A DNA stretch of 64,000 bases, taken from the sequence record NC_061447.1. One strand, 5' to 3'. The notes beneath the pieces are model-generated. The model made no database searches and had not been told where the DNA came from. It saw nothing but the letters and a program-made list of their open reading frames with translations. Position numbers and translations under genes: made by a program. Below are positions 5,932-63,162 of the stretch, piece after piece (position 1 is the first letter of the stretch; each line of letters opens with the position of its first letter).

Positions 5932-5947
5932 AGAACCTCACAATACG

Positions 5948-5971: not shown

Positions 5972-5978
5972 TCATTGA

Positions 5979-7655
5979 TTACTGACTCAGAGTTGTGGAG
6001 GTACTGCCTGTCGGGTTGATGTTGAAACGGTAGATCAGACGCTTAGTAGTGCGCGTCGGGTCCAACACGATATCCAGAATCAGATCGCCGTTAGCGATAG
6101 TCTGGTTGGTGTTGTTGTTTTCATCACAGACAACCTGATAGCCCTGAGAGCCAGAGCTACCGCTACGCAGACCACGAGCCAGTTTGATTTCTTCGAGGAA
6201 CTTCTCGACGATACCTTTCAGATAGCCACGAAGAATGGCATCGTTCGGGTCAAACAGGCCAACGCGGCAAGTGCGCTGACAGACTTCAAGCACGTAGCCG
6301 ACCATACGCTGAATCTGAATCTGCTGGAAGGCAGAGTTCTGGTTGTACTGAGTGCTCGCTTCCCACACCGCATAACCACCACCCATGATAGCAGGCAGTT
6401 TACGAATGTAGTTCACTTGCTCACGCGTCATCGCATCGCGGTCATCCTGATCGTATTTCTGAGCGATTTCCAGAATATCGAGAGGTGCAGAGGCGGTGAT
6501 ACCAGCAGGTGCGAACCAGCTACCACGGTTGTTATCCGTGTAAGCAAACACAGCACAGATCTGGCCGACACACGCAGTCCACAGATAGCGACCAGTGTCT
6601 TCGTCGAAGATCTTGATATCAGGCGTATACAGAGCCATGTTGGTGTCGTTGACGTTCAACGTCTGACGACGGTAGCGAATCGCTTTAGACACGGACTGCT
6701 CTGCGGACGGAACACCACAGATAACGAAGCAGTTGATGTGCGCAGCGGCCGCAGCTTTCATACCACGGTGGATGATGTAATCCTGAGTAGGACTAATCAG
6801 CAGCGTCACACGAACTTCTTCTGGATCACCAAAGTATTCCTGATACGCTTTCGCAAAGTCATCAGAACTACAGGTGTCACCATCAGCACCACCCTGGAAG
6901 AAGATGAAGTCTGTGGTGAAGAAGTCGATATCGGTGGTGAAGTATGGGTTACGGATGAAACGGAAGTTAGAGCTTTCGTTCTCCATAACGTGGTCGATAC
7001 GATACTGACGATCAAATTCATCAGCATAATCATACAGGCTGCACTGGTATGAGTTTACCGGATTGCTGCCGTTCTGATAGTTTTCGTATTCGTCGATATA
7101 AAACAGTTTCGTGTTATACGACTTACGGTCATCGAATGGGTCAAGACCCTTAGGCGTGGCCGGACGAATCTGCAACGCCATCTGGTTGTTCCAGTCGCCT
7201 GGGTTTTCCAGAATAACGTAGCCGATGATGTTGTCGTTCAACGGGTCAGTAGGCAGGAAGCCCAGCTGATCAGGAGAATCAACACCAACAATGTTGCCGT
7301 CTGCGTCAGTGTATGGCGTAATGCGCAACACAGGTTGAACAGCGGTTGGGTCATCGACAGTCAGCACACCAACAGCGTATTTCGCGTTCTTGGTGATACG
7401 GACAAATTTAAGCTGGTTAGTCTGTTTTGCAACAGGCAGCGCCAGATACAGGCCGAGGCCATATTTGGGATCTTTTGCACCGAAGATGTTTTTCAAATCA
7501 TCTTTATTACGCACATCAACACGCTGGTTTACAGGACCACGACGAGCCTGACCAACAATGCCTACTACTGCCGTAGATAAAGACGTTGCACCAACGGAGA
7601 GATCCCGTACACCAGTATAAACACCAGCAGAGGAATGCGTTGAGTTAACGGGCAT
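5979..7655 (-). CDS. Contractile tail sheath protein (558 aa)
   Basis: Start moved to MPVNSTHSSAGVYTGVRDLS (AAGGAG RBS). N-terminal GVY..VRDLS...VGIVGQARRGP and C-terminal IQIQRMVGYV...LFDPND...FLEEIKLARGL...YQVVCDENNNT...LDIVLDP match sheath family motifs. Confidence 0.9.
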   Translation of the reverse strand: MPVNSTHSSAGVYTGVRDLSVGATSLSTAVVGIVGQARRGPVNQRVDVRNKDDLKNIFGAKDPKYGLGLYLALPVAKQTNQLKFVRITKNAKYAVGVLTVDDPTAVQPVLRITPYTDADGNIVGVDSPDQLGFLPTDPLNDNIIGYVILENPGDWNNQMALQIRPATPKGLDPFDDRKSYNTKLFYIDEYENYQNGSNPVNSYQCSLYDYADEFDRQYRIDHVMENESSNFRFIRNPYFTTDIDFFTTDFIFFQGGADGDTCSSDDFAKAYQEYFGDPEEVRVTLLISPTQDYIIHRGMKAAAAAHINCFVICGVPSAEQSVSKAIRYRRQTLNVNDTNMALYTPDIKIFDEDTGRYLWTACVGQICAVFAYTDNNRGSWFAPAGITASAPLDILEIAQKYDQDDRDAMTREQVNYIRKLPAIMGGGYAVWEASTQYNQNSAFQQIQIQRMVGYVLEVCQRTCRVGLFDPNDAILRGYLKGIVEKFLEEIKLARGLRSGSSGSQGYQVVCDENNNTNQTIANGDLILDIVLDPTRTTKRLIYRFNINPTGSTSTTLSQ

Positions 7656-16382: not shown

Positions 16383-16641
16383 CTCTATCCTCTAAAACAA
16401 ATTGTAGTGTGCCCTGGATATTTACAGCATTCAGGCGTTTACCTGTAGATGCAATCAGGCCATTCAGAACGCCGATAAAGTCAGCGCTGTAACAGTCAGG
16501 AGCGATCTGGTGAACATAGATATCATCAGGCACGTCACCTGGGTTAAGCTGCCAAGCAGTACGCAAGGCAGCACCCATGAATGCCGGACGTTCTACCAGA
16601 TGCCTGTTCAGAAACGAACATACATCTTCGGCCGTTATCAT
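16348..16641 (-). CDS. Hypothetical protein (97 aa)
   Basis: Start overlaps the polymerase stop (ATGA). Confidence 0.6.
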   Translation of the reverse strand: MITAEDVCSFLNRHLVERPAFMGAALRTAWQLNPGDVPDDIYVHQIAPDCYSADFIGVLNGLIASTGKRLNAVNIQGTLQFVLEDRDEDLSIAEEPR

Positions 16642-19600
16642 TTCTTCGCAATCCCCTTAAGTGCGGACTTGAGCATAGACTTACTGATTTTGATTTTCTT
16701 CGGAGCACCACCGGCAGCAGCGGCTTTCTTAGCTTCCTCTTCTGCCTTGTACTTCTCAAACGTTTTGATGTTCTTCGGAAGTTCAGCACGCCATTCTTCG
16801 ATGTTCTTCTTGTCCTTGTTGGTGAGAGGATTAACTTTGTCCATGCTACGAATTTTGATATCGTTAGCCCAAAGCTGTTTCTTCATCCAATCGGACATGA
16901 GATGATACTGGTCTTCCATAATGCTGTCCAGTGTCTTCTCAACATCGAGGTCGGTCTCACCCAGCTCGTCACGTTTAATCTCAAGGCCGTCTTTAATGAG
17001 TTTCTTGAGTTGCGTGTAAGAGAAGTTCCAACCCTGCACGTCTTTCTCTGACGCACCGATTTCAAAGTCGATTTCAGGTACGGACGTGAACTCAAATCCT
17101 TCGTGACGCTTCTGCACTTTCTCGACCACTGCGCTGGTCATCGCACGTTCGATCATATCGAGCGCAAGGAAGATCCATTTGTAATCGCAGTCAACGGTCA
17201 AGGAGTCGTGTACCGATACGTTCATATCGAAGTCAGGGTATTCGCCATTCGCTTTCCAGTAGTCATACTTCATGCGGTCAAGAATACGAATCGCGGACAT
17301 CATCAAGTCAGAACCGAAGCCCTGTACTGGACTGTTTACCGCACGACGGTCACATGCTGCATGAACCATGTTCGCTTCTTTATGCGACTCTGGAAGCATC
17401 AGGCCCCAGAGATGACGACGACGACCAACTGGTGATTCAACAAAGAAGTTCTCGTGTGCAAACTTCTTAATCTTGTCGAACCATTTTAAGCCAACAGGGA
17501 ATCGTTTAAGGAACTTGCCTTTGATCTCAGCAATCTCCTCAACTTCACGTCCAGTTGACTTCGCAAGACCCTTATCACCCTGCTGATAGATCAGGCCGAA
17601 GATTACGGTCTTAACCGCGTTACGTACGGACTTGGTTACGTCCATTACGTTTGGAATACCGAAGAAGTACGCGGCGTTGATTTTGTGAACGTCACCTTCT
17701 GCTTCGACGCGGTGTTCGATCCACGGGTCAGGTACTGTACGGAAACGATGACGCAGCTTACGGCCTTGCTCGAATACGTCTGCAACGCCTTGGTCACCAG
17801 AGATGATTGACCAACCACGAACTTCGTGTGCCGAGTAGTCGACCTTGATAAGCAATCTGTTCTTTCGCGCAATCAGAATACGCTTGATCAGTTTACCCAT
17901 CTCGCTTCGACTTGGTACCTGTTGCAAGTTCGGGTCAGACGCTGAGGTACGTCCCGTTACAACTCCGAGATAGCCATAAGTTGGTCGGATTGAACGGTCA
18001 TGTTTGAAGTCCTCTGACTCTCCCCACAATTTAAGCAGGCTGTTAACGTAGGCGTTCTTGAGCTTGTACGCTTTGCCGAGCTTTGTGTAGAGCGACACCA
18101 ACGGAATATCTGCATACGCCGCTTGGAAGTCTTTGTCGAGCTTACCCGTCTTCTTGCCGTTCTCACGGAGCTGTTCCCCTTCTTTCAAAGGTTTGAGTTT
18201 CATCACATCGAAGAACAGGATTTGCTTATGCTCCGACTTCGACATATCGAACTTGGTGACTTCGACTTTGCCCATAAGACCCATCTTAGGAACGTTGTCG
18301 TCTTTGCAGATCACTTTGTTCGCAGCCTTAACCTCAGGGCTGTTCATGAACTCACGCTCTACGTTTCGAATCTCCTCGTTGATAGGAGAGTTCGGCAGGT
18401 TGAGCTTAAACAGGTAGTCGATATCGGCACCAGCACCTGTTGTTTCCAGAATGGAGAACGCATGAATCTGGTCGGAGATTTGCTCACTGACCATAGACTC
18501 ATACTTGCCGTACTTGATATCGTTCGCTCGCAACATCTGCTTCGCTGCAATACGGAATGGAACGATAACGTCAAGCCCTGCGTATTCCTGAACACTCTCG
18601 TCCAAGTCAACGTCGGCAATAGTCGCTCGCATCTCTTTACCGAACGACACTTCATGATACACCTTACAACCAAACTGCATTGTCAGGTTAGCCAAGTTGT
18701 AGTAACCGTTACCAGTTACGTTCAACAACAACTTGGCGTTTTCATCGAAGGCGAACTCGCCTGCTTGAATATCCCAAACGTTAGCAGCATAACTACGAAT
18801 GCCGAAGTTAGAGCGCATTACGTTCAGGTCGAACTTCGCGTTGGTATAGATTTGGTACTTGTTGTCGTTCTCCTCGAAGAAGTCCTTAAACAGTTCCTTA
18901 ACCTTACGCAGTTCTTTTGGACTGAATGGGCTGTCTCGGTGATAGACAGGTATGACATACGCTTTCTTACCGTCGTCCGATAACTGCACCGTCAGAATCT
19001 TGTTCTTGATACGGTTCAGGTTCTCGGTTTCGGTATCGACTGCAACCTTCTTGGCGCGCTTCATACGCTTCAAGATTTTTTCAAGTTGCTTGACCTTCGT
19101 TACATACACGAGGTCCCAGTTACGATTCTTACCGCACGTAACTTCGTCGATCTTATAACGCATCCCTTTGTTCAACCACGGCAACATCCAACGTGCCATG
19201 TAACCGAGAGTATACGATGAACCGCTGATGTGCATTGGGTTCAATACGGTGTGATAGCTGACATTCGGCAGATGGATAAAGCTGTGCTTCTTACCATCGT
19301 GTTTGAGCTTCGTCGGAATCTCCACACCGTACCAGTGCTCGTAGTGATCTTTCGAGAACTGAATCTTATCGGCGTTAAGCGCTTTGAACGGCGCCTTACC
19401 AAATGTTAGAACATAGTCTGGCTTGTACTCAACAATCAAATCACGAATACGATCCGCAAACGCTTGGTCTGCGTCTTCTTTGAACTGCTCGCCCTTGTCA
19501 TACGTCTTGAACATGTTGTACGAGACAACAAGGAAGTTCCAGTCGTCGAGAGTTGTCTTGGTCGGAAACGTATCTTCGAGATACTGAATCTGATTCAGGA

Positions 19601-19799
19601 ACAACTCACCTTCTGTGCTACTGAATATCTTGCCGTTACGCAAGTCTTCGGTTGGCATGTGATCGAGGACGAGTAGTGCTTTACCACCTTTAGCGCTTTT
19701 ACTTACGCCTTTTAGTATTCGAACACCGTCGTATGTCTGCTGGTCGGCAAACTGCTCAGGTGGCTCGAAGTCAAAAGCTATATGCTTGATTTTCACCAT
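16638..19799 (-). CDS. polA: Family A DNA polymerase with an N-terminal uracil-DNA-glycosylase-like domain and a 3'-5' exonuclease (1053 aa)
   Basis: Exo I VAVDTETE, Exo II NAKFDL, TGRTSASDPNLQQVP, motif A KVDYSAHEVR, motif B RNAVKTVIFGLIY, NSPVQG, motif C VHDSL. N-terminal LDHMPTEDLRNGKIFSSTEGELF and YKPDYVLTFGKAP resemble family 4 UDG. Confidence 0.95.
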   Translation of the reverse strand: MVKIKHIAFDFEPPEQFADQQTYDGVRILKGVSKSAKGGKALLVLDHMPTEDLRNGKIFSSTEGELFLNQIQYLEDTFPTKTTLDDWNFLVVSYNMFKTYDKGEQFKEDADQAFADRIRDLIVEYKPDYVLTFGKAPFKALNADKIQFSKDHYEHWYGVEIPTKLKHDGKKHSFIHLPNVSYHTVLNPMHISGSSYTLGYMARWMLPWLNKGMRYKIDEVTCGKNRNWDLVYVTKVKQLEKILKRMKRAKKVAVDTETENLNRIKNKILTVQLSDDGKKAYVIPVYHRDSPFSPKELRKVKELFKDFFEENDNKYQIYTNAKFDLNVMRSNFGIRSYAANVWDIQAGEFAFDENAKLLLNVTGNGYYNLANLTMQFGCKVYHEVSFGKEMRATIADVDLDESVQEYAGLDVIVPFRIAAKQMLRANDIKYGKYESMVSEQISDQIHAFSILETTGAGADIDYLFKLNLPNSPINEEIRNVEREFMNSPEVKAANKVICKDDNVPKMGLMGKVEVTKFDMSKSEHKQILFFDVMKLKPLKEGEQLRENGKKTGKLDKDFQAAYADIPLVSLYTKLGKAYKLKNAYVNSLLKLWGESEDFKHDRSIRPTYGYLGVVTGRTSASDPNLQQVPSRSEMGKLIKRILIARKNRLLIKVDYSAHEVRGWSIISGDQGVADVFEQGRKLRHRFRTVPDPWIEHRVEAEGDVHKINAAYFFGIPNVMDVTKSVRNAVKTVIFGLIYQQGDKGLAKSTGREVEEIAEIKGKFLKRFPVGLKWFDKIKKFAHENFFVESPVGRRRHLWGLMLPESHKEANMVHAACDRRAVNSPVQGFGSDLMMSAIRILDRMKYDYWKANGEYPDFDMNVSVHDSLTVDCDYKWIFLALDMIERAMTSAVVEKVQKRHEGFEFTSVPEIDFEIGASEKDVQGWNFSYTQLKKLIKDGLEIKRDELGETDLDVEKTLDSIMEDQYHLMSDWMKKQLWANDIKIRSMDKVNPLTNKDKKNIEEWRAELPKNIKTFEKYKAEEEAKKAAAAGGAPKKIKISKSMLKSALKGIAKK

Positions 19800-19888: not shown

Positions 19889-20875
19889 TTAAAGTTTACG
19901 CAGACCTTTCTTGATTGCAGCATTAACTTGCGCGGCTGACGGGTCTTTCGTTGCGAACAGATCGATGACGTTCGTGATTGAGTCCAGTTCGCCGAGATGA
20001 ATCTGGACGTTCTGCACTTTCTTCAAGTGGTCAGCGATGAATGTCAGCACCCAGCCTTTCTGTTTCATAACGACAGATACTTCCAGATCCTTGTATGAGA
20101 AGGAGAACTGATTACCTGCAGCACGAAGCAATTTGGCCGCACCAGGAATCGGCTCAACAGCGCGAATAAACTCAGGCGCATATTGGCGGGCAGTCTTGTT
20201 GCGTAAGACAGAATAGGCAGGGTCAAACGTCCGCAGCTTGGTTTTAGCTTTAGGCTTAGACCCAGGAGTACCACCAGTCTGTTTCTGATCTGGGTTCTGT
20301 GTCCACGTCAGACCTTCATCCAGACAGTTCTGGCCGGTAATCGCTTCCTGAATGATGACACGCTTGTTCTTGCCTGTCTCCACGTTGGCTTCGGCTTCAT
20401 CTTCGGTCTTGAACGGACCTTTGATGATAATGTCGTTCGCGTGACGTGTGTGGTCGATGACGTACCACTTGTTGCGTTCGATCTTACCGTTAGCGTCAAC
20501 AGTGTTCGAGCGCACAGGGCGAGTCGTCTTAGCAGGAGCGTTCTGCTGGATAGCGACAGGCTTCATCTTGATTGCGCGAAGACCATTGATGGTAGCCACC
20601 AGCGTTTTGGCCTTATACAGGTTCTTCATCGCGGTGACCAGAGACTTACCAGCAGCTTTCTTGGCGAAGGCCGTAGTAGCATCTGCATCGTTCAGCAGGT
20701 CGAGCACAGCAGACAGCTTTGCAGTGTCCAGCTCTTTAATCTTCACCAGCTCGTCAATCTTCTTGACGATCAGTTTCGCGTTCTTGCCAAAGAGAATCTC
20801 GGCGTTAGCGATCTGCTTTTTATTTGCAGCAGAGACTGACACCACAGCGCCAGATGGGAGAGTGATTTCGTGCAT
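19889..20875 (-). CDS. Basic Lys/Ala-rich protein, probable virion or DNA-binding protein (328 aa)
   Basis: AAGG RBS; K/A-rich; N-terminus MHEITLPSGAVVSVSAA carries the S-x-S-A leader motif. Confidence 0.75.
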   Translation of the reverse strand: MHEITLPSGAVVSVSAANKKQIANAEILFGKNAKLIVKKIDELVKIKELDTAKLSAVLDLLNDADATTAFAKKAAGKSLVTAMKNLYKAKTLVATINGLRAIKMKPVAIQQNAPAKTTRPVRSNTVDANGKIERNKWYVIDHTRHANDIIIKGPFKTEDEAEANVETGKNKRVIIQEAITGQNCLDEGLTWTQNPDQKQTGGTPGSKPKAKTKLRTFDPAYSVLRNKTARQYAPEFIRAVEPIPGAAKLLRAAGNQFSFSYKDLEVSVVMKQKGWVLTFIADHLKKVQNVQIHLGELDSITNVIDLFATKDPSAAQVNAAIKKGLRKL

Positions 20876-20884
20876 TGCTGTTCC

Positions 20885-21436
20885 TTATCGTTTCTTAGTC
20901 CAGTTGTTCTGCTTAACTGGAGTTGGTGAAGTATTCTCTTCCGTGATGCCGTCTGCGTCGTCTTCTTCCTCTTCCTCGACGTCATCCACTTCTGGCTCAG
21001 GCTGTGCTTCCTGGACAGGTGTGGTGTTGAGTACAGACGCAGCGATTGGTGCCTGTGACACTGTGTTTACAGTAGCAACAGGCTCGGCTTCGGCAGCTTT
21101 ACGAGCTTCTGCCACTTCACCTACAGCGTGTGCATGAACGAGATCAGTAGTCAGCAGCGCACCCTTCTCTTTCAGGATTGCATCTGCTTTCTCTTGATCC
21201 CACTGATCCCAGATAATGTCCAGAGACTTAAAGCCCCAGTTCATGCCTTTCGGCAGCTTACCGCGACCGTTGAACGGCAGACCGTTTGAAGGAGTAGCTG
21301 GCTCGAACTCGTCCATCATCTCCCACTTACGTTTTGCCTCGATACACTTAGGTCCCCAGACGCCATCACACGCACCGTCATAGAGACCGAGCATGGTCAT
21401 GATGACCTGGAGCTTCTGATAGAACTTGTTCAGCAT
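20885..21436 (-). CDS. Protein with an N-terminal peptidoglycan-binding (PG_binding_1-like) domain and an acidic tail (183 aa)
   Basis: KLQVIMTMLGLYDGACDGVWGPKCIEAKRKWE fits LQ..L..LG.Y.G..DG.FG..T..A...FQ. No catalytic domain recognised. Confidence 0.65.
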   Translation of the reverse strand: MLNKFYQKLQVIMTMLGLYDGACDGVWGPKCIEAKRKWEMMDEFEPATPSNGLPFNGRGKLPKGMNWGFKSLDIIWDQWDQEKADAILKEKGALLTTDLVHAHAVGEVAEARKAAEAEPVATVNTVSQAPIAASVLNTTPVQEAQPEPEVDDVEEEEEDDADGITEENTSPTPVKQNNWTKKR

Positions 21437-21452
21437 GGTGAGTCCTCACATG

Positions 21453-21481
21453 AAAGGAGGGGCCGAAGCCCCTTACCTTTT
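21453..21481 (-). terminator. Intrinsic terminator after the SNF2 gene
   Basis: Minus strand AGGGGC-TTCG-GCCCCT within a longer AAAGG...CCTTT stem. Confidence 0.75.
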
Positions 21482-24400
21482 AGACTGATTTGTTTTTCGA
21501 CATGGTCAGTTTCAACTTGTCGAGCGCAGTAGTGACCTTCTTAATGTTCGTGATGTTGTAGCCTGCTTTCACGATCTTATTGATACGTGCTTTCGCAGTA
21601 GCCACATTCTTCACGAAGCCAATCCACATGCCAGGCGACAGGTCGAACGTACCGAACTTACGAGTGTTCGGGATTTTCGTACCGACGAAGCGTTTCATCT
21701 GCGGGTTGGTTTTCAGGTCGAACATAATACGCAGTCGGTCTTCCATGATCATCGGGTATGCCTTGACGTGTTTCTTATCAGAGGCAGACTTGTGTTTCAC
21801 GAGGAAGAACTTCGGCAGTTGCTCCTGACCTTTCGTAGCCAGTTTGACGTTGAAGCCCATACGCGGCGTAGACTCGTCGAAGAAGTCCAGTACGAACTCC
21901 AGACGTTTCTCGGATGGTTTGTCGAATGCCAGTTTCTTCTTAACCTCGATGAAGTCAAGCATGGCCTCGAAGTCCGAGTAGTACACGCAGTCGTAATAAA
22001 CGTAATCGCCGAACTCAACGAAGTCGAATGCCTTGAGTGCTTCTGCATCAGGGTCAGTCGCGTTCGCATACAGCGCAACGAATCCGTTATACACGGTAGG
22101 AGTCAGGTCCATCGCCATATCAGCACCAGTAGCTTCGGCCACAGCTTTAGCACCAGGCTTCATGCGAGTCGTGGTGTTAGCCAGAGGAGGCAGGTCTGCA
22201 ACCTTACGACGGCGAACTTTCTTGGCAGCTTCTTCAACACCTTCGTTGATTGGCTTACCAGTCTTTTTGTTCTCCACACGCTTGGCCACGCGAGCAGCTT
22301 TACGCTCTTGCGCTTCGACTTTCTTCTCTGTCTGCTTGGTGTCAGCCGTCTGCGTTTCATCAGCAACAGTGTCTTCGACTTCAACACGGTTAGCTTCGGC
22401 ATTAGCACGTTTGCGATCTTTCTCGTTCGCCCATGCCTTACGCGCCTCGAAGAAACGTTTCAGATCGTTCTTGTCTACCTTCGTAGCAATGTGAACTTTC
22501 GTCGCAGGAACTGCAACGGTTTCACCAGAGCCAGCCAGACGAACACGAACGGTACTGATAGGACTGTCACCACGCAGCTTACCATCGACCATACGAACAG
22601 TCACAGACACGACAACGCCGTTACCGAACTCAGTCACGACAGGTGCACGATTCAGAGAATCTTTCAGCCCTTCGCCGCTGGTGAAGTTACGGTTACGCGC
22701 CCAATCCAGAAGACGCTCAGTGCCCCAGCCGTTACGGTCTGGAATCTTCTGGTTCGCAACAAGCGGCGTCTGCTCCATCACACGGAAGTCAGTCAGAGCT
22801 GGCGTTGACGGCAGTGCTTGCATTGCAGCAATAGTCGTCTTACGCATCTCCTGGAACTCCTGCGATTCGATATCGTTAAGATCACGTTTCGCGAGGAAGT
22901 ATGGAGCAAAGTCTTCCATTGTGTTGTTGTCGATCAGCAGCTTCGCACTCATTTTGATTGGGTCCAGTTTATACTGGTCGAGTGCTTCGTAACGCTGGTT
23001 GCCTTTCTCGTCGAAGCGAGTCTTCTCCAGGGTCTTCCACATCAGACGTGCAACCTTACCAACTTCTAAGGTCTTGTTCGTCATAACCCAGTCGATGAAC
23101 ACAACTTCACGAGCCATGTCACCTGGCTTACCATTCTCGTCCAGCTTCGCCGCAGCAACGTCAGGACGGAAGATACGCGCAGTAGACTGGTCGTAGGTAC
23201 CAGGTGACCACGGAGTATCGCAGCGGATGATACGGCTACCCATCTGCATGTTGTGGCCTTCGGAGATCGCTTGTTCGTTCGCAATCAGAATCTGAACGTT
23301 CGGGTCAGTTTTGAAAGCGTCGAGGTTAGCGTCTTTGTTCTGGCCGAGCTTACCAACTTCACCGTGATACACTACAGCAACTTTCTTATAGTTGGCTGGC
23401 AGTGCATTGTAGATGGCGTTAGCAGCGCGAACATAACGAGTGAAGACAATCAGCTTGCCTTGCACCTCAGGCTTCCAGTAGTCTGGATCGTCTGGAGGTG
23501 GAACCATTGAAGGCGGCAGCGCTTGACGCTTGAACTCTTCGGACTGCTTACGTGCCAGATACTTCTGACCGTTGTAGACAGCAATGTCCAGTTCACGCGG
23601 CTCTACGCCAGGCTTCCATTCGAAGATCTGCTGTTCGCCGATCAGATGGTCACGCTCAGGCTGCACTTCGAAGTGCTTGCGAATACGGTCGATGATGGTC
23701 AACACTTTCGCAGAAACGAAGTTGGTAACGCCTGCGGCTTCAAACGTCAGACGAGCAACGTCATCACCCATAGGGTCAGTCAGCATCATTTCCATACGCT
23801 GGAAGTACATGTTCAGGTCAGCGTTACTCGCTAACAATGCACCCAGGTCATCGCCTTCTTCGATTTCGTCTTCGTCGATATCCGATGTGGAATCACCATC
23901 ACCACCAGCTTCGTCGTCATCGTCGTCGCCACCGCCACTTTTCTTCTTGGCGTTCTTGGCCGCTTCGTCCAGCTTCTCCAGAACTTCCGCGTACATTGCG
24001 TTGTACACTTCCTGGTGAAGCGCAGAGTTAGGCACTGACGGATCATCGATCTCAACCTGGATGAAGGTATCAATCGGGTTCGGCAGCATGAACGCCCAGT
24101 GCTTACGCTTGAACGAGATGAACGCCGTATGGTTAGCCATACGTGAGTGCGCACGACGAATCATTTCGATATCATCTTTCGCGCCATCATACGCAACGTC
24201 CAGTGAATCACCGAACATAGCAGGCGTCATCAGTGCAGCCTGACCAACGATATCACGCACACGGTCAGTTACCAGTGTACCAGTAGCGATACGTGCATAG
24301 CGAACGGACGGAGCAGTGAAGACCGCTTTGGTGTTGAAGTGAACCTGAGAGCCAGCCTGACCGCCAGAGAAGTTCTTCACTTTGTGGGACTCGTCGAGCA

Positions 24401-45304: not shown

Positions 45305-45628
45305 TTACTCCACTGTATCTAACGCTTGCGCCGTGTACTCACGCAGAGTACGCTCGATATTCTTGGCCAGAGTAGGGTGACAGATAAGCTGGTGGTCTTT
45401 CATGTACACACGCAGCGATGGTCGCATCACCTTACGCACTTGAGGATAGAGGCCAAACATTTTATGCAGGGGAGTCTTGTAGTAGAACTCCTCCTGCTCG
45501 TCTACGCAATTGATACTGGACACAACCTCATACTTAGCAAAGATATGAGGGTTGCGATTAATATACGCAGGGTCAATAGGCACACTACCTTTTTCATGAT
45601 CGCGATTGACTTGACCGAAGATCATCAC
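45305..45628 (-). CDS. Hypothetical protein (107 aa)
   Basis: Start overlaps the SbcC stop. Confidence 0.65.
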   Translation of the reverse strand: MMIFGQVNRDHEKGSVPIDPAYINRNPHIFAKYEVVSSINCVDEQEEFYYKTPLHKMFGLYPQVRKVMRPSLRVYMKDHQLICHPTLAKNIERTLREYTAQALDTVE

Positions 45629-47961
45629 ATTACCTTACGTGTAAGTGCAGACGTACCTTGCTTCTTGGTTACCGTCCACTGATTATGAGAGAAGTGCTCA
45701 ACATCATTCGGAGTTATCCAGTAAATGTTCGGGATAATCTGTTTGAGTATCGGCAGGAAGTTGTTGATGATGTGCTCACTCACCGCAGGGCTGCAACTGT
45801 TATCAGGCTCGTCGAGAATGATAAAGTTCGTGCGACGGTTAGCAGGGATGAATGGCATGATCGCTACGGCAAACAACAGGCGGAAGCAGTTTGTCTCTGC
45901 ACCACTCATGATTGCAATATCGGTTGTCTTTTTAGAAGACACACGCGTAACGGTTGCACCAACACCCTGCTTGGTAGTGAACAAATCGAAGTGCATCGGC
46001 TCAGGGAACACCAGACCGCTGTATTCGTTCAGCTTCTTCTCAATCTGTTTGATACGGCCTTCAACCGCTTTCAGCTTGAGAGCATTGTTGCTGTAAGCCT
46101 TGTACAGGACTTCGAATACTTTGCGCTTATCAATCAGCGGTTGCAGGTCTGCGAGTTTACTACGGAGTTCACGCAACGTTTCTTCGTAGTGCTCATGCTC
46201 CTGAATACGCATCTGGATGTTCTGCGCTTTACGCTCCTTCTTCTCGATATCGGTGATCAGCTTTTCAACTTCGGCGCTAATCTTCTTATATCGACCATCG
46301 AGTATATAGAACGGATCTTCTGGTTCGCCAACAGCTTTGAGTGCAGCACGAAGGTCTTTCAGAATCTCAAGGTCCTTGATTTGGTTCTTGATCGTCTTAC
46401 GAGCTTTCTTAGGCTGCTTCACTGCTTTAGGTTTCTTGAGCGCATCACGCTTGGCCACCAGCTTCTCGTACTTCTTAGCCGCTTCGAATTGTTCTTCGAT
46501 AGCGTCCAGTGCTGTGCTGATTGCCTTGAGTTTCTTCTCAAGGTCCTTGCGCTTGTGCTTAGGCTTCTTCACCTTCTCTGCTTTCAGTTCTGTAAGCTGA
46601 TCGTTGAGCTTGTGATAATCCAAAGCCTCGATGCACTCGTCAATGATTGCCTGAGCTTTCGTTGCAGCGCGAGCCATAGCTTTCAGGTCAACATCCTGAC
46701 CGCAGGTAGGGCAAGAGTTACCATCGTGGTCATGTTCTTCGAAAGCACGATACGCCTGAACTATCGCTTTGGCTTCTGCTCTGGAATCTTGTGCCTCTTC
46801 CTGAGTTCGCTTAGGAGCCTTGAGCTTAGACAGCTTTTTACTGAGCTTGTCCACGGCTTCTCGCCACTCGTCGTATTCTTCTTGTTGTTCATCGACTTTC
46901 TCCAGCAACGCTTCGAGGCTCTCTTCCTCTTTGACTAAGCGTCCATGTTCTTTGCGCAGCTTTTTGTTATCGAGGTCAGCAACATCACCGAGCGCTTTCA
47001 TTTTCTTTTTAACGTCAGCGAGTTCCTGTTGGTACTCCTCCAGTGCTTCAACGTAATCGTCGTAGCGGTCGTGCTCGATCAGTTCACCACGCAGCGCATT
47101 CAATTCGCCTTTCAGGTCAGAGCATTCGATGCCTAACGTGTCGAGTTGATGCTTGAGCTTCTCATACTTCCGCGCGTTCGAGCGCTGAGTACCGAGTTCA
47201 ATCAACTGCTCCGACAGATCGTTACGTCTGGCCTTCATTTTATCAGAGTGCTTGATGATTGAGGCGAGCGTATTCTTTTCTTCGGCGTGAATCGACAACG
47301 CGTTCTGCTTACGTTGAGTAACGTCCAGCATATCAGCCAGACCTTTAGATTCTGTCTCAGCGTCTTTCGCCAAGTCCAGTTTCTTCTTCAACGCCATGCG
47401 AATGTTATCGAACACATCCAGGTTAAACAACGAGGTCAGGTAAGACAGGCGTTCAGCAGGAGTAGCGCGTTGGAATGGATGCTGAATCTGTGACTGGATA
47501 TATGCGTAGCTATAGAACTCGTCACGCGTTAATGGCCAGTGCTTCGTCACCCAAGAGCGAGCAACATCCTGACGATCTACTTTCTGGTTCTCACCATTGT
47601 AGAACACCTGATACTTCGATTTGGTTTGAACGATACGGACTTCACCCCCGAGAGGTGATTCCCACGCCAGCTCAATCGAACTGTCTTTGCCGAGCATGTT
47701 CCCCTTGTCTTTCTTTTTCATTGCAAGAGGGTCAGCTTCATACAGCAGCGTAGGGATTGCACCGAACAACAGGCTTTTGCCTACACCGTTCGTGTTGTCT
47801 TTAACGTTCGGACTGTCGAGGTTCTTACCACAAATGGTTGCGAAGCCTTCACTGTCCAGTGTGTCGATATCAAGCTCTTTGTACACGCCAACATCGCGCA
47901 GATGAATTTCTTTCAGGCCGATGCCGTGGTTCTGTTTTTGCTTCTGCTTCGCTTTGCCCAT
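45625..47961 (-). CDS. sbcC: SbcC/Rad50 (T4 gp46-like) SMC-type ATPase (778 aa)
   Basis: Walker A TNGVGKS with an insertion, Q-loop YIQSQ, long coiled coil with zinc hook CPTCGQ, signature MSGAE, Walker B ILDEPD. Confidence 0.92.
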   Translation of the reverse strand: MGKAKQKQKQNHGIGLKEIHLRDVGVYKELDIDTLDSEGFATICGKNLDSPNVKDNTNGVGKSLLFGAIPTLLYEADPLAMKKKDKGNMLGKDSSIELAWESPLGGEVRIVQTKSKYQVFYNGENQKVDRQDVARSWVTKHWPLTRDEFYSYAYIQSQIQHPFQRATPAERLSYLTSLFNLDVFDNIRMALKKKLDLAKDAETESKGLADMLDVTQRKQNALSIHAEEKNTLASIIKHSDKMKARRNDLSEQLIELGTQRSNARKYEKLKHQLDTLGIECSDLKGELNALRGELIEHDRYDDYVEALEEYQQELADVKKKMKALGDVADLDNKKLRKEHGRLVKEEESLEALLEKVDEQQEEYDEWREAVDKLSKKLSKLKAPKRTQEEAQDSRAEAKAIVQAYRAFEEHDHDGNSCPTCGQDVDLKAMARAATKAQAIIDECIEALDYHKLNDQLTELKAEKVKKPKHKRKDLEKKLKAISTALDAIEEQFEAAKKYEKLVAKRDALKKPKAVKQPKKARKTIKNQIKDLEILKDLRAALKAVGEPEDPFYILDGRYKKISAEVEKLITDIEKKERKAQNIQMRIQEHEHYEETLRELRSKLADLQPLIDKRKVFEVLYKAYSNNALKLKAVEGRIKQIEKKLNEYSGLVFPEPMHFDLFTTKQGVGATVTRVSSKKTTDIAIMSGAETNCFRLLFAVAIMPFIPANRRTNFIILDEPDNSCSPAVSEHIINNFLPILKQIIPNIYWITPNDVEHFSHNQWTVTKKQGTSALTRKVM

Positions 47962-52060: not shown

Positions 52061-52648
52061 TTAACCCAACATCGGGAGAAGATTTTGCAAGAAATGTTTC
52101 TTGTCGAATGACGTAATTCGGTGAGGATGATCAATGTGCGTGTTCCATCCTTTGGTAAACAGCATCACATTGTTAGGCAGCTTCAACTGATCGCCGACGC
52201 GTGTGAACTTGTCGCGCACCGCAGTAACAGGATTGTCGTCAACCAGAATCCAAGTACCTTCACCGAACTTCTCATTCAGGTAGGCAATCTTATCAGGATG
52301 CTGGCGACTGTCCAGAACTTCGATATGGTCGAACAACGACAGGTGTTTCTCCAGAGCCTTACGCGTGTTGCGTTCACCTTTAGCGTGATAGCCACGATGC
52401 GTACAAATGCCGACGCTGAAACCGTCACGCACCAACATCGCAACAGTCTGGATGAAGTAGTCACGCATGTTGGCTTCAAACATGAAGCGGCCATCTTCCA
52501 ACATTTCGACGAAAGGCTCATGTCCATTCTCTGGCGTGATGTACGTGTCAGTGCCTGGGTAGATTCCCCAGTTCATCAGATAGCACAACATGAAGTTATG
52601 CGTATCAAACGCCGTGTCGTCCATGTCGAAGAAAATATATTTGATCAT
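52061..52648 (-). CDS. HAD-superfamily hydrolase, 5'(3')-deoxyribonucleotidase-like (195 aa)
   Basis: Motif I YIFFDMDDT, motif II ICTHR, motif III K (PDK), motif IV LVDDNP. Confidence 0.8.
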   Translation of the reverse strand: MIKYIFFDMDDTAFDTHNFMLCYLMNWGIYPGTDTYITPENGHEPFVEMLEDGRFMFEANMRDYFIQTVAMLVRDGFSVGICTHRGYHAKGERNTRKALEKHLSLFDHIEVLDSRQHPDKIAYLNEKFGEGTWILVDDNPVTAVRDKFTRVGDQLKLPNNVMLFTKGWNTHIDHPHRITSFDKKHFLQNLLPMLG

Positions 52649-55840: not shown

Positions 55841-57457
55841 TTACTCCGAGAATATCTTTTTATCAGAAAACTTCTTGAGTACAAACTCGGCGTGGTTGCT
55901 CGTTACGGTGTCTCCTTCAACGCAGAGCAATGCGCCATCGTGCTCAAGAGAATACACACCCTTGACGTTAGGGCAGTTAAGAATCGCATCGAAAAGAAAA
56001 TAACTCTCCCACCCAGAAAGCATGTGGTTGAGAACGCGCTTCTTAATCTTCTTGTCCGTATCGTCAGGATCAGGATCATAGTTCGATCCCGTTGCACACT
56101 GGAGAACGCCGTATTCTGGCCTCCGTGCATTTTTATTTTTTCGGAACTTGGAACGATACACACCAAGCAGATCAGTGATGGCGAAATACAGAGGCGTCAT
56201 CCTCGTATTCCAATCCAATATCTCCTCTTTCACTTTCGAGACAGGCATGAAGCGAGCAAGTTCCTTAAAGACGTTGCTGTACTTCGTTGTTTCAAGTTGA
56301 CCTGCTGAGAAGATTGTACCGTATAAACAAACTTTTGCTGCACGTCTGTCCAATTTCATTATGCGACTGATATCATCAACGGAGCTTACCGTATCAAACA
56401 TCGCACACTCAATTCCGTAAGCGCCAAACTCTTTACGCAACACGTTGAACTGGCTGGACTTCATATCCCAGTTAGTGCCAATCGTGTAACATTGCTCTTT
56501 CAGGTCTGACGGTAAGTTCTGGAACCCACCACCAACTTCGAACAGTCGTCCGCCAATTTGCGACAGCCTATATTTAGGCCAATAACGAATGACAAGAGGT
56601 TTCTCGCTAACGATCTGAACAGGCCCCGACACAATAGTATCGAGCAACGTCTTAACCTGCAGGTACTGCTTCTTCGCCTTGTGATTAGCAATCAAGGACC
56701 TGTCTTCTAAATAAGCGAGGATAGGTTCGATGTTCACCTCATTCGGCATCAGCTTGTCAAGTACCTTACGATAAAGAGCACGGCCTTTAAGTTCCTTACC
56801 GTTACCCCTGTCACGATTTCGATCAAGCGAGCTAAGATCGTGCGTAGGGCGTTTGAACGGCAGCTTAGAATTTTTCTGAATCTGCGACCACACCGTTACC
56901 CCGTAATCCTCTCTCAAAATTTTAAGAGGGCTATAGAATCGAATGCGGTACAAAATATCGTAATGAGACTGCGGCTTAAAATGCCCGTACATCCCGTCTA
57001 AGATTTCAGGACGCATCCTAAACTCTCGACTAAGGCCCTTTTTCTTATCGTACGGTTTCGTTTCAAACACGTTAGCCATCAGCCAATCAAGGGATCTACT
57101 AAACGTGCCTTTCTTCGACTTGGCATATCGCCCTACAGCCACATTATCACCGCCCCTTTGATGACCGAACACCATAGGTAGCTTTTCTTTGCCCAATGAG
57201 CTTGGAAACGGCACCCAGACCCGTCCAAACTTCTTCTTTTTGTGTTTACGTGCAGGATAAAGGCTGCATTGAAGAATGTGCCAGAAGAATAAGTTCAATT
57301 GAGCACGGAACTCACGTTGTTCAGCATCAGGCCCCTCGTACGGGCAAGCGTTTATAACGTTGTCTCGCACCCAAATAACGACTTCCTTCTCCTGGTACGA
57401 GGGATTCGTGACGAGCACGGGCCCCTGACCGGAAACGATTCGTTTTTTCATGTTCAC
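55841..57457 (-). CDS. Divergent family A polymerase-like protein (TV-Pol-like; candidate primase/initiator) (538 aa)
   Basis: GRLFEVGGGFQNLP, motif A-like WDMKSSQF, motif B-like RRAAKVCLYG, NHMLSGWES and motif C-like LEHDGALL, in the order of the family A palm/fingers. No exonuclease domain. Confidence 0.65.
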   Translation of the reverse strand: MNMKKRIVSGQGPVLVTNPSYQEKEVVIWVRDNVINACPYEGPDAEQREFRAQLNLFFWHILQCSLYPARKHKKKKFGRVWVPFPSSLGKEKLPMVFGHQRGGDNVAVGRYAKSKKGTFSRSLDWLMANVFETKPYDKKKGLSREFRMRPEILDGMYGHFKPQSHYDILYRIRFYSPLKILREDYGVTVWSQIQKNSKLPFKRPTHDLSSLDRNRDRGNGKELKGRALYRKVLDKLMPNEVNIEPILAYLEDRSLIANHKAKKQYLQVKTLLDTIVSGPVQIVSEKPLVIRYWPKYRLSQIGGRLFEVGGGFQNLPSDLKEQCYTIGTNWDMKSSQFNVLRKEFGAYGIECAMFDTVSSVDDISRIMKLDRRAAKVCLYGTIFSAGQLETTKYSNVFKELARFMPVSKVKEEILDWNTRMTPLYFAITDLLGVYRSKFRKNKNARRPEYGVLQCATGSNYDPDPDDTDKKIKKRVLNHMLSGWESYFLFDAILNCPNVKGVYSLEHDGALLCVEGDTVTSNHAEFVLKKFSDKKIFSE

Positions 57458-57517
57458 ATCATGATTACCTGATTTTTCTATCGTTTCTTTACAGAATCAG
57501 ACAACTCTTAACTCCGA

Positions 57518-57620
57518 ATGCTACAGCTGGAAGCTACAACAGCTAGGCATGGAAGGCATGGGCTACAGCGGGCTAGCTACAACGCTCGTGGTACGCTTGA
57601 ACATTACAACTACAGGTACA
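57518..57620. repeat. Cluster of short imperfect direct repeats (GCTACA x4, GGCATGG x2, TACA)
   Basis: GCTACA at 57520, 57533, 57562 and 57576; GGCATGG at 57546 and 57555. Confidence 0.6.
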
Positions 57621-57677
57621 TCTTTAGGCGGCACGTTTCGGAGACATAGAAAATAAAGAAACCATGCTCCGAGCAGC

Positions 57678-57860
57678 CTAGATTGCACCCTCTACGCACC
57701 CTGGGTAGCGATCTAGCGGAAAACCCTAGGTCGTCTAAACCGTGTAAATTTTTCCAAAAAAGTAGTGCATTTTTTGACCAAATGCCCCTTTTCAGACTAA
57801 AAATGAGGAAAATCCGAGAAAAATCAAGGACTTTCCCCCAATTTTGAAACGAAAAATCAG
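57678..57860. other. Inverted repeat plus phased A/T tracts (origin- or packaging-site-like)
   Basis: CTAGATTGC-ACCC...GGGT-A-GCGATCTAG at 57678-57716, followed by A4-6/T4-6 runs spaced about 9-11 nt apart from 57749 to 57870. Confidence 0.4.
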
Positions 57861-57861
57861 A

Positions 57862-59739: not shown

Positions 59740-60288
59740 ATGCGTATTCTTTCAGGCGACCCGGGAAAGGTTAACTTCGCGTTGTCTGTCACTGAATTTA
59801 AGGACAAGCGCATAGAGATTCTCGGGACGAGGATGTTTCAACATCCAATTCAAAACCTACATCACGACATGCGCCAACCAGTCAAAGAGTTCATGAAAGA
59901 GCTTGATGACATATGGAAGCGCTATGGACCGTTTGATGCAATGTGCTTCGAGCGATTCCAGTCTCGTGGTCTTGGTGGTAACACTATCGAGGCGATCAGT
60001 TTGATGCTCGGTGTTGTCTCCTTGTTCGCATTGAAAAAGAACTGCCCGATCGATTTGATCACGGCGAGTCAGTGGAAGAACGCGTTCAACCGCACTATGG
60101 ACCTTAAAGGTTATTACGCGCATTATAATCTGACTTCCAAAAAGAGTCGCAAAGCGATTCACGAATTTGACGCAAGCCTTATTGGCATGTATACCTTCTA
60201 CCGACATACGAACCGGAAACCATTCGCAGGCTTCGACCGCATCGTTGACGTCTACGTTCCGAAGTTCTTGTCAGCACCTGTACTGTGA
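59740..60288 (+). CDS. ruvC: RuvC-like Holliday junction resolvase (182 aa)
   Basis: ILSGDPG (catalytic D), CFERF (E), ASQWK, HEFDASLIG (D); GAGGAG RBS. Confidence 0.85.
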   Translation: MRILSGDPGKVNFALSVTEFKDKRIEILGTRMFQHPIQNLHHDMRQPVKEFMKELDDIWKRYGPFDAMCFERFQSRGLGGNTIEAISLMLGVVSLFALKKNCPIDLITASQWKNAFNRTMDLKGYYAHYNLTSKKSRKAIHEFDASLIGMYTFYRHTNRKPFAGFDRIVDVYVPKFLSAPVL

Positions 60289-60707: not shown

Positions 60708-61400
60708 ATGGCGAAGTTAAAGAAAGAACAAAAGGCAGTTGCGGCAAAGAAACCTGTTAAGGTGAAGAAGTCAGTAGCTACCAAAACAAATAAAGGAAAA
60801 GCAGTTCCGATTCGTGTTGTGCAGGACAATCGTCCAATCATTGTCTGCCCTGAAATGGAAGACAAGCCGCAACAGTTTCGTTTTCGTGGTCAGTGTCCGA
60901 TCACAACGTGCCAGTATTGCACACGCGAAACGCCTACAGGCTGTATGGCGTTAGACCGCAAAGAAGCTGCCGACCGTTCAATCTCTAACAAGGAGATCGC
61001 TTATTACAAACGTGGCCTCTTCCCAGAACTCAAAGAGATGGATCAAAAGCAGTTGGACAATACGATTCGACGCGCACAAAATCGTACCCGTACTGCTATC
61101 TGTCTTACTATGTTTATTGCCGGGATTGATGATTCTGATTGCGATCGGTCTTTTGAATACGTAGAAGGCCGAAGCCGCATTGTCGATCAGGTTCATAACT
61201 ATCTGGTTCAAACGTTCAACGACTATCGCCCATGGATGCTTGCCTACCTGGACGATGAAGAACGATTTACTCAGATGGTTGGCAAGATAACCAATTCTGA
61301 ATTTAATTTAGGCACAGCGCTGCGGTTAACGCCTCGTAAGTATCAGACGTTCTGCCAGTCGCTACAGAACCTTAAACAATCTGGAGACTCCAATGAGTAA
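60708..61400 (+). CDS. Hypothetical protein with a Lys-rich N-terminus and a CPITTCQYC metal-binding motif (230 aa)
   Basis: Start MAKLKK at 60708; exact CTGTAAATA 36 nt upstream on the plus strand. Confidence 0.7.
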   Translation: MAKLKKEQKAVAAKKPVKVKKSVATKTNKGKAVPIRVVQDNRPIIVCPEMEDKPQQFRFRGQCPITTCQYCTRETPTGCMALDRKEAADRSISNKEIAYYKRGLFPELKEMDQKQLDNTIRRAQNRTRTAICLTMFIAGIDDSDCDRSFEYVEGRSRIVDQVHNYLVQTFNDYRPWMLAYLDDEERFTQMVGKITNSEFNLGTALRLTPRKYQTFCQSLQNLKQSGDSNE

Positions 61401-63162
61401 CTTTATTTCTCTCGATCAGTATCGCGCTTTTATTCAGCGCAACATTCTGAGCGAGCCTCAGATGCTGGTCAGCAACCAGACTCAGCCGCTGGGTCAAATC
61501 TCTTTCCAGTGCCCAGGTGACAACTTCCAGATGAAGGACGTTATCATTCCTGCGACGCGCAATGCTGTTGACCTGACGCAGCAAGCGCCTCTGGAAAACC
61601 TGCTGGCGTGTAGCCAACTGAAATCTCTGATCCAGTTGCAGCGTGTCGCTCTGCTGAACCCTGACGATATGCCTCAGCCTGGTGAAGGTATTCCACAACC
61701 TTCTCTGTCACAAACTCCAGTCGCTGGTGCAGTGTCAGTTGACGGTACCACAATCCCTAACGCCGTTGTGATCGTTGAGCAGAACGGTAACGTGTGGACT
61801 GGTACTTCGAACGGTAGTGGCGTGTTCACTGTTGACGTGTCTGGTCTGGAAGAAGGTCCGTTCTCGATCACTGTAACTGCAAACGGTTATACGCCAGCGC
61901 GTTACGACTTCGAAGCAGGCCCACAGCCGCTGCAACCAATGCCTGAGCCTGTTGTTCACGCAGTCTTCAAAGAAACTACGGTTTCGGGAACGACTGTTGC
62001 GAATGCTAATATCGTGGTATCGGTACAAAGCAAACAGTTCACTGGTCAGGCTGATAACGCTGGTGCGTTCTCTATCAACGTTGACCCACTGCCGTTTGGC
62101 GATATCAACCTGACGTTCACTGCTGACGGCTATCTGGATAAAACGGTAACTGTCGTAACTGACTCAGTGCCTGGTCTGGCGCAGATTGACAGCGCATCGT
62201 TCCTGACTACTTCTCTGTCTGGTAAAGCAACGCCAGAAGCAGAAGTCGAAATCCTGATCGACGGCCAGTCTAATCAGTTCGCTACTGCCAATGCGCAGGG
62301 TGACTGGGCTGCTACTGTCGGTGCCGTTAAAGGCGCTGTGTCTATTCGTGTGCTGGAGAAAGACGGCTACGATGAAGCAACCGCGACAATGCAGCCGACT
62401 AAACTCCAGTTCGGTGCAATCGCAGTTGATGACGCTGATGCGTTCGGCGAAACTCGCACTGTGGTATCTGGTACCATTGCAGGTCTGAATGCCGAAGCGA
62501 ACGATATCGCTGTTACCGTAACAGTTCAGGCTGGCGTGTACGAAGGTACTGTCAATCTGGCTGCTGGTACGTTCAACATTACTGGTGTTGATGCGAAAGC
62601 TGGTGTGGGTTCTACTGGTGTGGTCAACGTTACCTCTGCGTTCTACGAAGATGGTTCAACGTCGTTCACTATTCTGGAAGAGTTCGCTGCGCCTACGCTG
62701 CAACAAGCACAGGACGGTCAGACTGCTGTAGTCGGTGACACTGTTGCGAGCGCCACCGTTAAGATCACCATGAACGGCGAAACCAAAACTGCGTCTTCAA
62801 ATCCGCAGGGTGCGTTCAGTGTTAACGGCTTCACGAACGTTGTGCCTGGTCCGATCACTATCGAACTGTCACGCGCTCAATATCTGCCAGCTTCCTTCCA
62901 GGTTACTCTGGTCGTTGAAGCACTCGGTCAGCTTGATGCTGATCTGAAAGCTGGCGAAGACACCGTTGCAGGACAAGCAACGCCTGGCTCTACTGTCACT
63001 TTGACGCAGGGTAGCGTTACAGGTGATGCTGTAGCTGATGCGTCCACTGGTGAGTTCATTATTACGCTGTCCGGCCCTCTGGTTGAAGGTCAGGCTCAGC
63101 TTGTGGTGCAACATGCTGGCTATGTTGACTTCACCGACACTTTAGCTGTCGCGGCAGCTTAA
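61393..63162 (+). CDS. Virion surface protein with tandem Ig-like domains (Hoc-like decoration candidate) (589 aa)
   Basis: GGAG RBS; repeated TVSG.T..NA.V.V/I...G...A...G.F units; N-terminal domain shared with 63216..63866. Confidence 0.75.
   Translation: MSNFISLDQYRAFIQRNILSEPQMLVSNQTQPLGQISFQCPGDNFQMKDVIIPATRNAVDLTQQAPLENLLACSQLKSLIQLQRVALLNPDDMPQPGEGIPQPSLSQTPVAGAVSVDGTTIPNAVVIVEQNGNVWTGTSNGSGVFTVDVSGLEEGPFSITVTANGYTPARYDFEAGPQPLQPMPEPVVHAVFKETTVSGTTVANANIVVSVQSKQFTGQADNAGAFSINVDPLPFGDINLTFTADGYLDKTVTVVTDSVPGLAQIDSASFLTTSLSGKATPEAEVEILIDGQSNQFATANAQGDWAATVGAVKGAVSIRVLEKDGYDEATATMQPTKLQFGAIAVDDADAFGETRTVVSGTIAGLNAEANDIAVTVTVQAGVYEGTVNLAAGTFNITGVDAKAGVGSTGVVNVTSAFYEDGSTSFTILEEFAAPTLQQAQDGQTAVVGDTVASATVKITMNGETKTASSNPQGAFSVNGFTNVVPGPITIELSRAQYLPASFQVTLVVEALGQLDADLKAGEDTVAGQATPGSTVTLTQGSVTGDAVADASTGEFIITLSGPLVEGQAQLVVQHAGYVDFTDTLAVAAA

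Follow-up and report, generated by a model that had tools for sequence, protein, structure and literature searches.

The 64,000-nucleotide stretch analysed here (the window; record NC_061447.1) belongs to the genome of Erwinia phage pEa_SNUABM_33 (Alexandravirus; 263,237 bp), and its base 1 corresponds to base 124001 of the record. The genes of the window, among them those for PolA, a processivity factor, helicases, SbcC, a RecJ-like DHH protein and a RuvC-like resolvase, form a module for replication and recombination. On its minus strand lies an uninterrupted open reading frame (ORF) of 538 codons with a long non-coding gap directly in front of it (Table 1). We conclude that this ORF very probably encodes an active, exonuclease-less polymerase of the TV-Pol family, belonging to the subset with an N-terminal domain of the TV-PolN type. 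Translation starts at the GTG at 57457 or, alternatively, at the ATG at 57451 (residue 3), and several orthologues start at the equivalent of this ATG. A three-codon mini-ORF (ATG ATG TGA, 57451-57462, minus strand) overlaps the annotated GTG start.

Table 1. Features of the TV-Pol locus of phage pEa_SNUABM_33, in window coordinates.
Feature	Position	Strand	Basis and remarks
Gene of the predicted TV-Pol family polymerase	55841..57457	-	538 amino acids; QZE58094, 'hypothetical protein'; phrog_30690, function unknown
N-terminal domain, residues 1-200, basic (isoelectric point 10)	56858..57457	-	hhalign; weak winged-helix structural matches
Winged-helix-like signature, residues 119-156, helix then beta-wing	56990..57103	-	Secondary structure of the model; weak matches
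Minimal family-A polymerase core, residues 201-538 (thumb coiled coil, beta-hairpin, palm, fingers)	55844..56857	-	Klenow match; Foldseek
Hairpin motif GGRLFEVGGGFQNLP, residues 302-316	56510..56554	-	R304 invariant; alignments of 17 and 77 sequences
Motif A, NWDMKSSQ, residues 329-336	56450..56473	-	D331, predicted catalytic Asp; alignment of 77 sequences
Motif B (fingers O-helix), DRRAAKVCLYGTIFS	56306..56350	-	K375 invariant, Y379 conserved; alignments
Motif 6-like, NHMLSGWE	56006..56029	-	G482 nearly invariant, E484 invariant; alignments
Motif C, EHDG, residues 505-508	55934..55945	-	D507, predicted second catalytic Asp; alignment of 77 sequences
Non-coding region directly upstream, 404 bp	57458..57861	-	Gap of 340-500 bp in 8/8 clade phages compared
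CTGTAAAGA box, about 36 nt before the start codon	57486..57494	-	CTGTAAA invariant in 8/8 clade phages
Four same-strand TGTAGC repeats in two units of about 43 bp, 62 nt	57520..57581	-	Candidate binding or initiation site
Conserved block GCCGCCTAAAGATGTAC	57616..57632	-	Kept in four phages
Conserved block TTTACACGGTTTAGACGACCTAGG	57725..57748	-	Near-identical in four phages, partly kept in others

The polymerase fold was recognised in an AlphaFold2 model of the protein (predicted local distance difference test score, pLDDT, 81), which was based on a clade alignment of 17 orthologues sharing 43-93% identity. In a Foldseek search of the PDB, the best 48 matches were all family-A DNA polymerases. 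When the model was compared independently with a wide set of representative structures, Klenow came first (Z 15.8, root mean square deviation 3.8 Å over 281 residues, model residues 202-530), followed between Z 14.2 and 12.9 by Pol theta (14.2), the apicoplast polymerase, Pol nu, Taq-type enzymes and T7 DNA polymerase (12.9). The mitochondrial and T7 RNA polymerases reached Z 11.2 and 10.2, and the first unrelated chain appeared at Z 4.8. Since residues ~200-533 match family-A polymerases, the C-terminal 340 residues represent a thumb-palm-fingers module of the Pol I/T7 superfamily, in which the model places helices 243-254 and 259-277 before the hairpin and the palm. The palm-domain fold, on which an earlier reading of this DNA from its letters alone (the sequence-only reading) had staked its proposal of a polymerase, is thus present in the model.

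That reading had described the protein as a second and highly divergent family A-like polymerase lacking an exonuclease, a description that our results bear out. It is indeed the second polymerase of the window, which also encodes a PolA of 1053 amino acids with a 3'-5' exonuclease (16641-19799, minus strand). The divergence is seen in the fact that the model has a family-A fold, yet the Pfam DNA_pol_A profile (PF00476), run over the whole genome, matched the 1053-residue PolA and one weak unrelated sequence and left the 538-residue protein undetected. Used as a single query, the protein found nothing in Pfam, NCBIfam or a phmmer search of PDB sequences. Among 1.84 billion representative proteins, searched with a profile, 337 relatives were retrieved at E ≤ 1e-3, and 77 of these were aligned; no Pfam domain was found in any of the 77, and their profile drew from the PDB sequences weak winged helix-turn-helix and repeat noise and zero polymerases. 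Comparing the clade protein with the window's PolA as a single sequence by hhalign gave an uninformative probability of 1%. With regard to the exonuclease, Pfam matched no such domain in the protein, its N-terminal part is modelled as helical with a small wing and is not nuclease-like, and nothing in the model resembled an exonuclease domain or a remnant of one. Neither did Pfam or NCBIfam reveal a fused nuclease of any other kind, and no nuclease gene is adjacent.

The four motifs that the sequence-only reading had listed in order (GRL...FQNLP, D-MKSSQ, R-x-x-AK-x-x-x-YG and HDG) are all in place, and their residues are invariant in all 17 orthologues. Among the 77 wider relatives R304, D331, K375 and E484 are invariant, while Q313, N329, G482, H506, D507 and G508 are nearly so. 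We take R304 to correspond to the hairpin Arg of the Pol I motif TGRLSS..PNLQNIP, D331 to the motif A Asp and K375 to the O-helix Lys; presumably, G482 and E484 are equivalent to the QG motif of Pol I, and H506 and D507 to the His-Asp pair of its motif C. Judging from these alignments, the conservation of the motifs lies far beyond chance, and the pattern is that of an active enzyme. Like Pol I (Klenow and Taq), Pol theta and Pol nu, the protein combines the thumb-palm-fingers fold (Z 13.8-15.8) with equivalents of motifs 1-2, A, B, 6 and C. Its identity to these enzymes is low (about 12-15%), and it differs from Pol I in the missing exonuclease and in several positions of the active site. Motif 6 has the consensus R...AH.LQG.E in the family and R...N...QG.AAD in Pol I, motif C reads HDG here and HDE in Pol I, and position 338, where a Glu steric gate of the Pol I type would be expected, is Asn in the clade and variable across the family. 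Without a Glu gate and with HDG in motif C, the sugar specificity of the enzyme cannot be read from its sequence. Motif B includes RRAAKVCLYG (residues 371-380), and the fingers (residues 365-431) give a weak homeodomain-like structural match (Z 4.5).

The assignment to the TV-Pol family, which the sequence-only reading had suggested, proved right. This family, the minimal relative of the family-A DNA polymerases, was described in 2008 by Iyer, Abhiman and Aravind, with the Microcystis phage Ma-LMM01 among its founding hosts (PMC2579912). The profile of 77 sequences matched a single ORF of that phage, ORF030 (BAF36121; E 1e-37), which adjoins two transposases, in agreement with Iyer et al. (2008; PMC2579912). 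From this sole match and the adjoining transposases we infer that ORF030 is the protein in their alignment. When the clade alignment was compared by hhalign with ORF030 and its 54 nearest relatives, the probability was 100% (E 1.6e-47, 411 columns), and the aligned span, residues 57-522, covered the N-terminal domain as well as the polymerase core. The clade alignment alone reached Ma-LMM01 weakly (E 0.006), so that the link is to be regarded as real but distant. The clade and Ma-LMM01 are bridged by a metagenomic protein from a bacterial contig (P0106), which adjoins a phage-type integrase and detects by plain tblastn both the orthologue of Dickeya phage JA11 (1e-9) and Ma-LMM01 (4e-9). The Ma-LMM01 group includes transposase-linked and integrase-linked members.

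Structural matches to viral proteins point in the same direction. Among the best matches outside the clade in a viral structure library (Foldseek E 4e-8 to 2e-5) were the 'DNA replication protein' of the Zamilon virophage and a protein of Pyramimonas orientalis virus (1019 amino acids), named 'Replication origin-binding protein domain-containing protein'; both rank above the majority of common phage PolA enzymes. We take these two, by name and length, for TV-Pol-helicases of the Sputnik V13 type. Such proteins resemble the phage protein in the polymerase core; in contrast to it, they carry a C-terminal helicase and act as the sole replicase of small viruses, whereas the phage protein, with 538 residues, stands alone. 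With the TV-Pol family, for instance ORF030 of Ma-LMM01, it shares the minimal core with a thumb coiled coil, the Arg-bearing hairpin, the palm with two Asp residues and, less certainly, helix-turn-helix fingers, in which a Lys is conserved; it also shares the lack of a nuclease domain, an extra N-terminal domain and strong profile homology over the full length. As regards the RxxxK motif of the fingers, the position four residues before the conserved Lys is Arg here, Lys or Arg in 16 of the 17 clade members and basic in 33 of the 77 wider relatives, and is not conserved family-wide.

The family itself has been known since 2008, and what is new is the context: a lytic phage of 263 kb that has both PolA and DnaG and no linked helicase or recombinase. 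The copy studied here differs from the family as described in that lytic jumbo phages, which possess an exonuclease-bearing PolA and a DnaG-type primase already, keep it at a fixed, syntenic position, and in that it is not linked to a D5-like helicase, resolvase, integrase or transposase. In a literature search we found no report of a TV-Pol as a fixed gene of jumbo phages.

The N-terminal region was described in the sequence-only reading as basic over about 250 residues, and residues 1-250 indeed have an isoelectric point of 10.0, with 47 Lys and Arg against 25 Asp and Glu. Its conservation across the clade equals that of the polymerase core. In the model the domain looks like a basic winged helix, with weak structural matches to the winged helices of TFIIE, ORC2 and Z-beta (Z about 4) and profile matches, likewise weak, to ArsR-type regulators (E 0.4-0.6); a search of the ESM Atlas with residues 1-200 gave no usable match. 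According to the profile comparison, the domain is homologous to that of recombinase-linked TV-Pols and is presumably the TV-PolN domain, an equivalence of names that we draw ourselves.

Upstream of the gene, the cluster of TGTAGC repeats is the sole such cluster in the 263-kb genome. At the equivalent place phage pEa_SNUABM_2 has three tandem copies, and Yersinia phage fHe-Yen9-02 has three copies that are the only paired ones in its genome. Distant relatives (L002-L005 and Vibrio phage GR11A) have long upstream gaps as well, of 265-1087 bp. We also considered other explanations for the conserved elements. The CTGTAAAGA box was rejected as a general phage promoter: there are three exact copies in 263 kb, about the number expected by chance, and the other two lie inside unrelated sequence. 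Iteron arrays were likewise not retained as a family-wide trait; the evidence is mixed, with repeats present upstream of the relatives in L003 and L004 and absent in L002, JA11 and GR11A. A structured RNA was rejected as the principal explanation of the gap, with no Rfam match, a weak consensus fold and no covariation support; folded as a single sequence, the gap has a z-score of -2.2. Two pairs of inverted repeats bracket the gap (57470-57479/57817-57826, 10 nt, perfect; 57464-57478/57851-57865, 15 nt, 87%); one arm overlaps the ribosome-binding region, and the arms are conserved in four phages without compensatory changes.

The genomic position of the gene is conserved. The order resolvase, 369-residue gene, 219-residue gene, gap and TV-Pol is kept in five genera, namely Alexandravirus, Sasquatchvirus (Y3), Salmondvirus (JA11), Snuvirus and that of fHe-Yen9-02. 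Outside the clade, a full-length relative was detected in Vibrio phage GR11A (E 4e-99); the Pseudomonas phages PaBG and Lu11 yielded no relative. In that unrelated Vibrio phage (vB_VcorM_GR11A, 195 kb) the TV-Pol homologue is preceded by 1.1 kb without annotated genes (locus 5009-6094), with a Rep helicase upstream and an RNase HI downstream. Neighbours of the TV-Pol gene with roles in repair and recombination are the RuvC-like resolvase (59740-60288), SbcC (45625-47961) and a PNK/HAD-like protein (52061-52648). A DnaG-type primase of 352 amino acids with a CHC2 zinc ribbon and a Toprim domain is encoded 103 bases past the window end (record 188103-189161, minus strand), 6.6 kb from the TV-Pol gene. 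It is labelled 'hypothetical' in the pEa_SNUABM_33 record, and its JA11 orthologue is named 'putative DNA primase'. No D5-like helicase, resolvase, integrase or transposase is annotated within ~12 kb of the TV-Pol gene, where all genes are 'hypothetical'. Nor was a linked helicase or recombinase found in the loci of the relatives L002-L005 or in GR11A.

The one TV-Pol that has been assayed is CcPol of the staphylococcal cassette chromosome mec (SCCmec), which has no TV-PolN domain (Rice, 2023; PMC10061031); TV-Pols that carry the N-terminal domain have not been assayed. CcPol alone only extends primers, and priming needs the small protein MP with an oligonucleotide/oligosaccharide-binding (OB) fold; when bound to MP, CcPol primes DNA synthesis de novo with deoxynucleoside triphosphates (dNTPs) (PMC7581432). 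The preferred start sites of this synthesis lie close to iterons (Bebel et al., 2020, PMC7581432; Rice, 2023, PMC10061031). Compared by description, CcPol and the phage protein are both exonuclease-less A-family polymerases placed among the TV-Pols. In SCCmec, however, the polymerase needs MP and is followed by a helicase, whereas the phage protein has an N-terminal domain of its own, the gene behind it encodes a helical protein and no helicase comes after that. The gene downstream of the phage polymerase (55313-55837, minus strand; 174 amino acids) starts 3 nt past the polymerase stop codon. Its product is modelled as an all-helical bundle (pLDDT 77) whose best PDB match is uninformative (Z 4.7); it had no PHROG match, and a DMP19-like (DNA-mimic) Pfam match was weak and below threshold (E 0.009). 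In the sister genera this slot holds unrelated-looking genes for 165-362 amino acids, with no sequence conservation across the clade. Should the phage enzyme prime, its N-terminal domain would be the more likely stand-in for MP.

The precedent set within the family by CcPol, the DNA-binding-like N-terminal domain and the genome-unique repeats lead us to favour, tentatively and at somewhat less than an even chance, a self-contained, site-directed primase-polymerase or initiator. In such a mechanism, the N-terminal domain would bind DNA, its candidate site being the unique TGTAGC array together with the CTGTAAAGA box, both of which lie in the conserved gap that precedes the gene. Next, a short strand would be started de novo, or extended, by the polymerase core without proofreading; the replicative PolA with its exonuclease would take over afterwards, and the separate DnaG-type primase would handle lagging-strand priming. 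A more specific version appears possible but doubtful, namely that a TV-Pol of the TV-PolN type is an origin initiator in its own right, whose winged helix reads the TGTAGC/CTGTA array and whose core lays the first primer without a single-stranded DNA-binding protein or helicase as partner. If this were true, the 404-bp gap would be a replication origin, and a third, PolA-derived class of primase would stand beside DnaG in this clade of jumbo phages and in hundreds of uncultured large phages.

Several observations weigh against an initiator. A second primase is not required, because the phage encodes a primase of the DnaG type. A partner with an OB fold like that of MP was looked for in the downstream gene and rejected, as its product is a helical bundle in a slot that is not conserved. 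None of the nine neighbouring genes scanned encodes a helicase or recombinase, although classical TV-Pol contexts have one. Phage Y3 carries a degenerate form of the TGTAGC array, and JA11 and SNUABM_7 yielded no such cluster. In favour of an initiator stand the long gaps of distant relatives, the TGTAGC repeats of pEa_SNUABM_2 and fHe-Yen9-02, the shared CTGTAAAGA box and the synteny in five genera. The cumulative GC skew of the whole genome, too, has its minimum near the TV-Pol gene, 6.5 kb away in the primase gene (~188 kb), with the maximum at ~56 kb; this minimum is a weak hint of an origin, because the GC skew of phages mostly tracks the direction of transcription.

The same observations would partly suit a primer-dependent DNA polymerase that does not prime at all and serves in gap filling, lesion bypass or strand displacement during recombination-dependent replication, with an N-terminal domain that targets DNA structures or partners. 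CcPol without MP merely extends primers (PMC7581432), and the phage has no OB-fold partner, a DnaG primase of its own and neighbours for recombination and repair (the RuvC-like resolvase, SbcC and the PNK/HAD-like protein). Moreover, Pol theta and Pol nu, which are exonuclease-less repair enzymes, are among the top structural matches. Such a role would nevertheless leave unexplained the conserved long upstream gap with its genome-unique repeats, and also the winged-helix-type N-terminal domain held in common with TV-Pols of mobile elements; the context of those TV-Pols speaks for a role in replication initiation (PMC2579912). A further objection is that dedicated DNA polymerases typically have a Glu steric gate, which this family lacks. 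We regard a purely primer-dependent function as the main rival, though a rather unlikely one.

The sequence-only reading had offered a small RNA polymerase as an alternative; our results do not favour it, and we consider it improbable. As a single-subunit enzyme, it would transcribe part of the phage genome or make one specific RNA. It would fit the lack of the Glu gate and the motif HDG, for which the HDS of T7 RNA polymerase is a closer counterpart than HDE. The N-terminal DNA-binding-like domain would be analogous to the promoter-binding N-terminal domain of T7 RNA polymerase, and T7-like enzymes (T7, mitochondrial, N4 RNAPII) share the superfamily fold (Z 6.6-11.2) along with an N-terminal nucleic-acid-binding module. 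No domain of a T7-like or multisubunit (beta-prime) RNA polymerase was recognised in the genome; for the T7-like type this blank is weak, because the control for PF00940 matched nothing and the search is therefore uninformative. However, DNA polymerases match the model better than RNA polymerases do (about Z 13-16 against 10-11), the motifs GRL..QNLP, SQ and QG.E belong to the Pol I type, and T7-like RNA polymerases exceed 880 amino acids. The conserved upstream motifs are not a promoter-like set, as they are not repeated genome-wide in the way that promoters would be. Relatives of the protein are carried by transposon and integrase elements, and dNTPs are the substrate of the one relative that has been assayed (PMC7581432).

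Finally, the gene could be of no use to the phage, as what is left of a TV-Pol mobile element that is decaying or purely selfish. This would agree with the usual residence of TV-Pols in transposons or integrative elements, as for the Ma-LMM01 copy (PMC2579912), but is highly improbable: all 17 orthologues, with identities as low as 43%, have intact full-length ORFs in which the catalytic residues are invariant, the position is fixed and syntenic in five genera, and a recombinase is lacking nearby.

The gene offers a tractable system, since it is a conserved, syntenic gene of culturable jumbo phages of Erwinia, Dickeya and Yersinia. It could be used to ask whether PolA-derived enzymes prime replication and how their start sites are chosen, and why a phage with a full set of PolA and DnaG keeps a second polymerase that does not proofread. 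The assignment also provides a function-level annotation for 337 representative metagenome clusters, where the gene has so far been placed in PHROG families of unknown function, and it indicates a candidate replication origin in phages considered for the biocontrol of fire blight and soft rot.

The cluster names of the relatives are 'hypothetical' throughout, and so are all the records listed for Erwinia, Dickeya and Yersinia relatives, except that of a distant homologue in pEa_SNUABM_5 (MW366843, 181163-182110; 25% identity over residues 32-383). The latter is labelled 'putative helicase', which is probably a mis-annotation. In Dickeya phage JA11 (MH389777; locus coordinates 20001-21635) the annotated start of the orthologue is internal and yields 405 amino acids. 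The protein match begins ~420 nt upstream of it, and the deposited model thus loses most of the N-terminal domain. The BFVD entries of JA11 (405 amino acids) and JA13 (284 amino acids) look truncated in the same manner.

Two further genes of the window deserve mention. One encodes an unusually large phage helicase (21480-27326, minus strand), a protein of 1948 amino acids with SNF2-type helicase domains that belongs to phrog_21391. The other (61393-63162, plus strand) encodes a protein of 589 amino acids with three CarboxypepD_reg-like domains and two Big_6 Ig domains, which is probably structural or adhesin-like.

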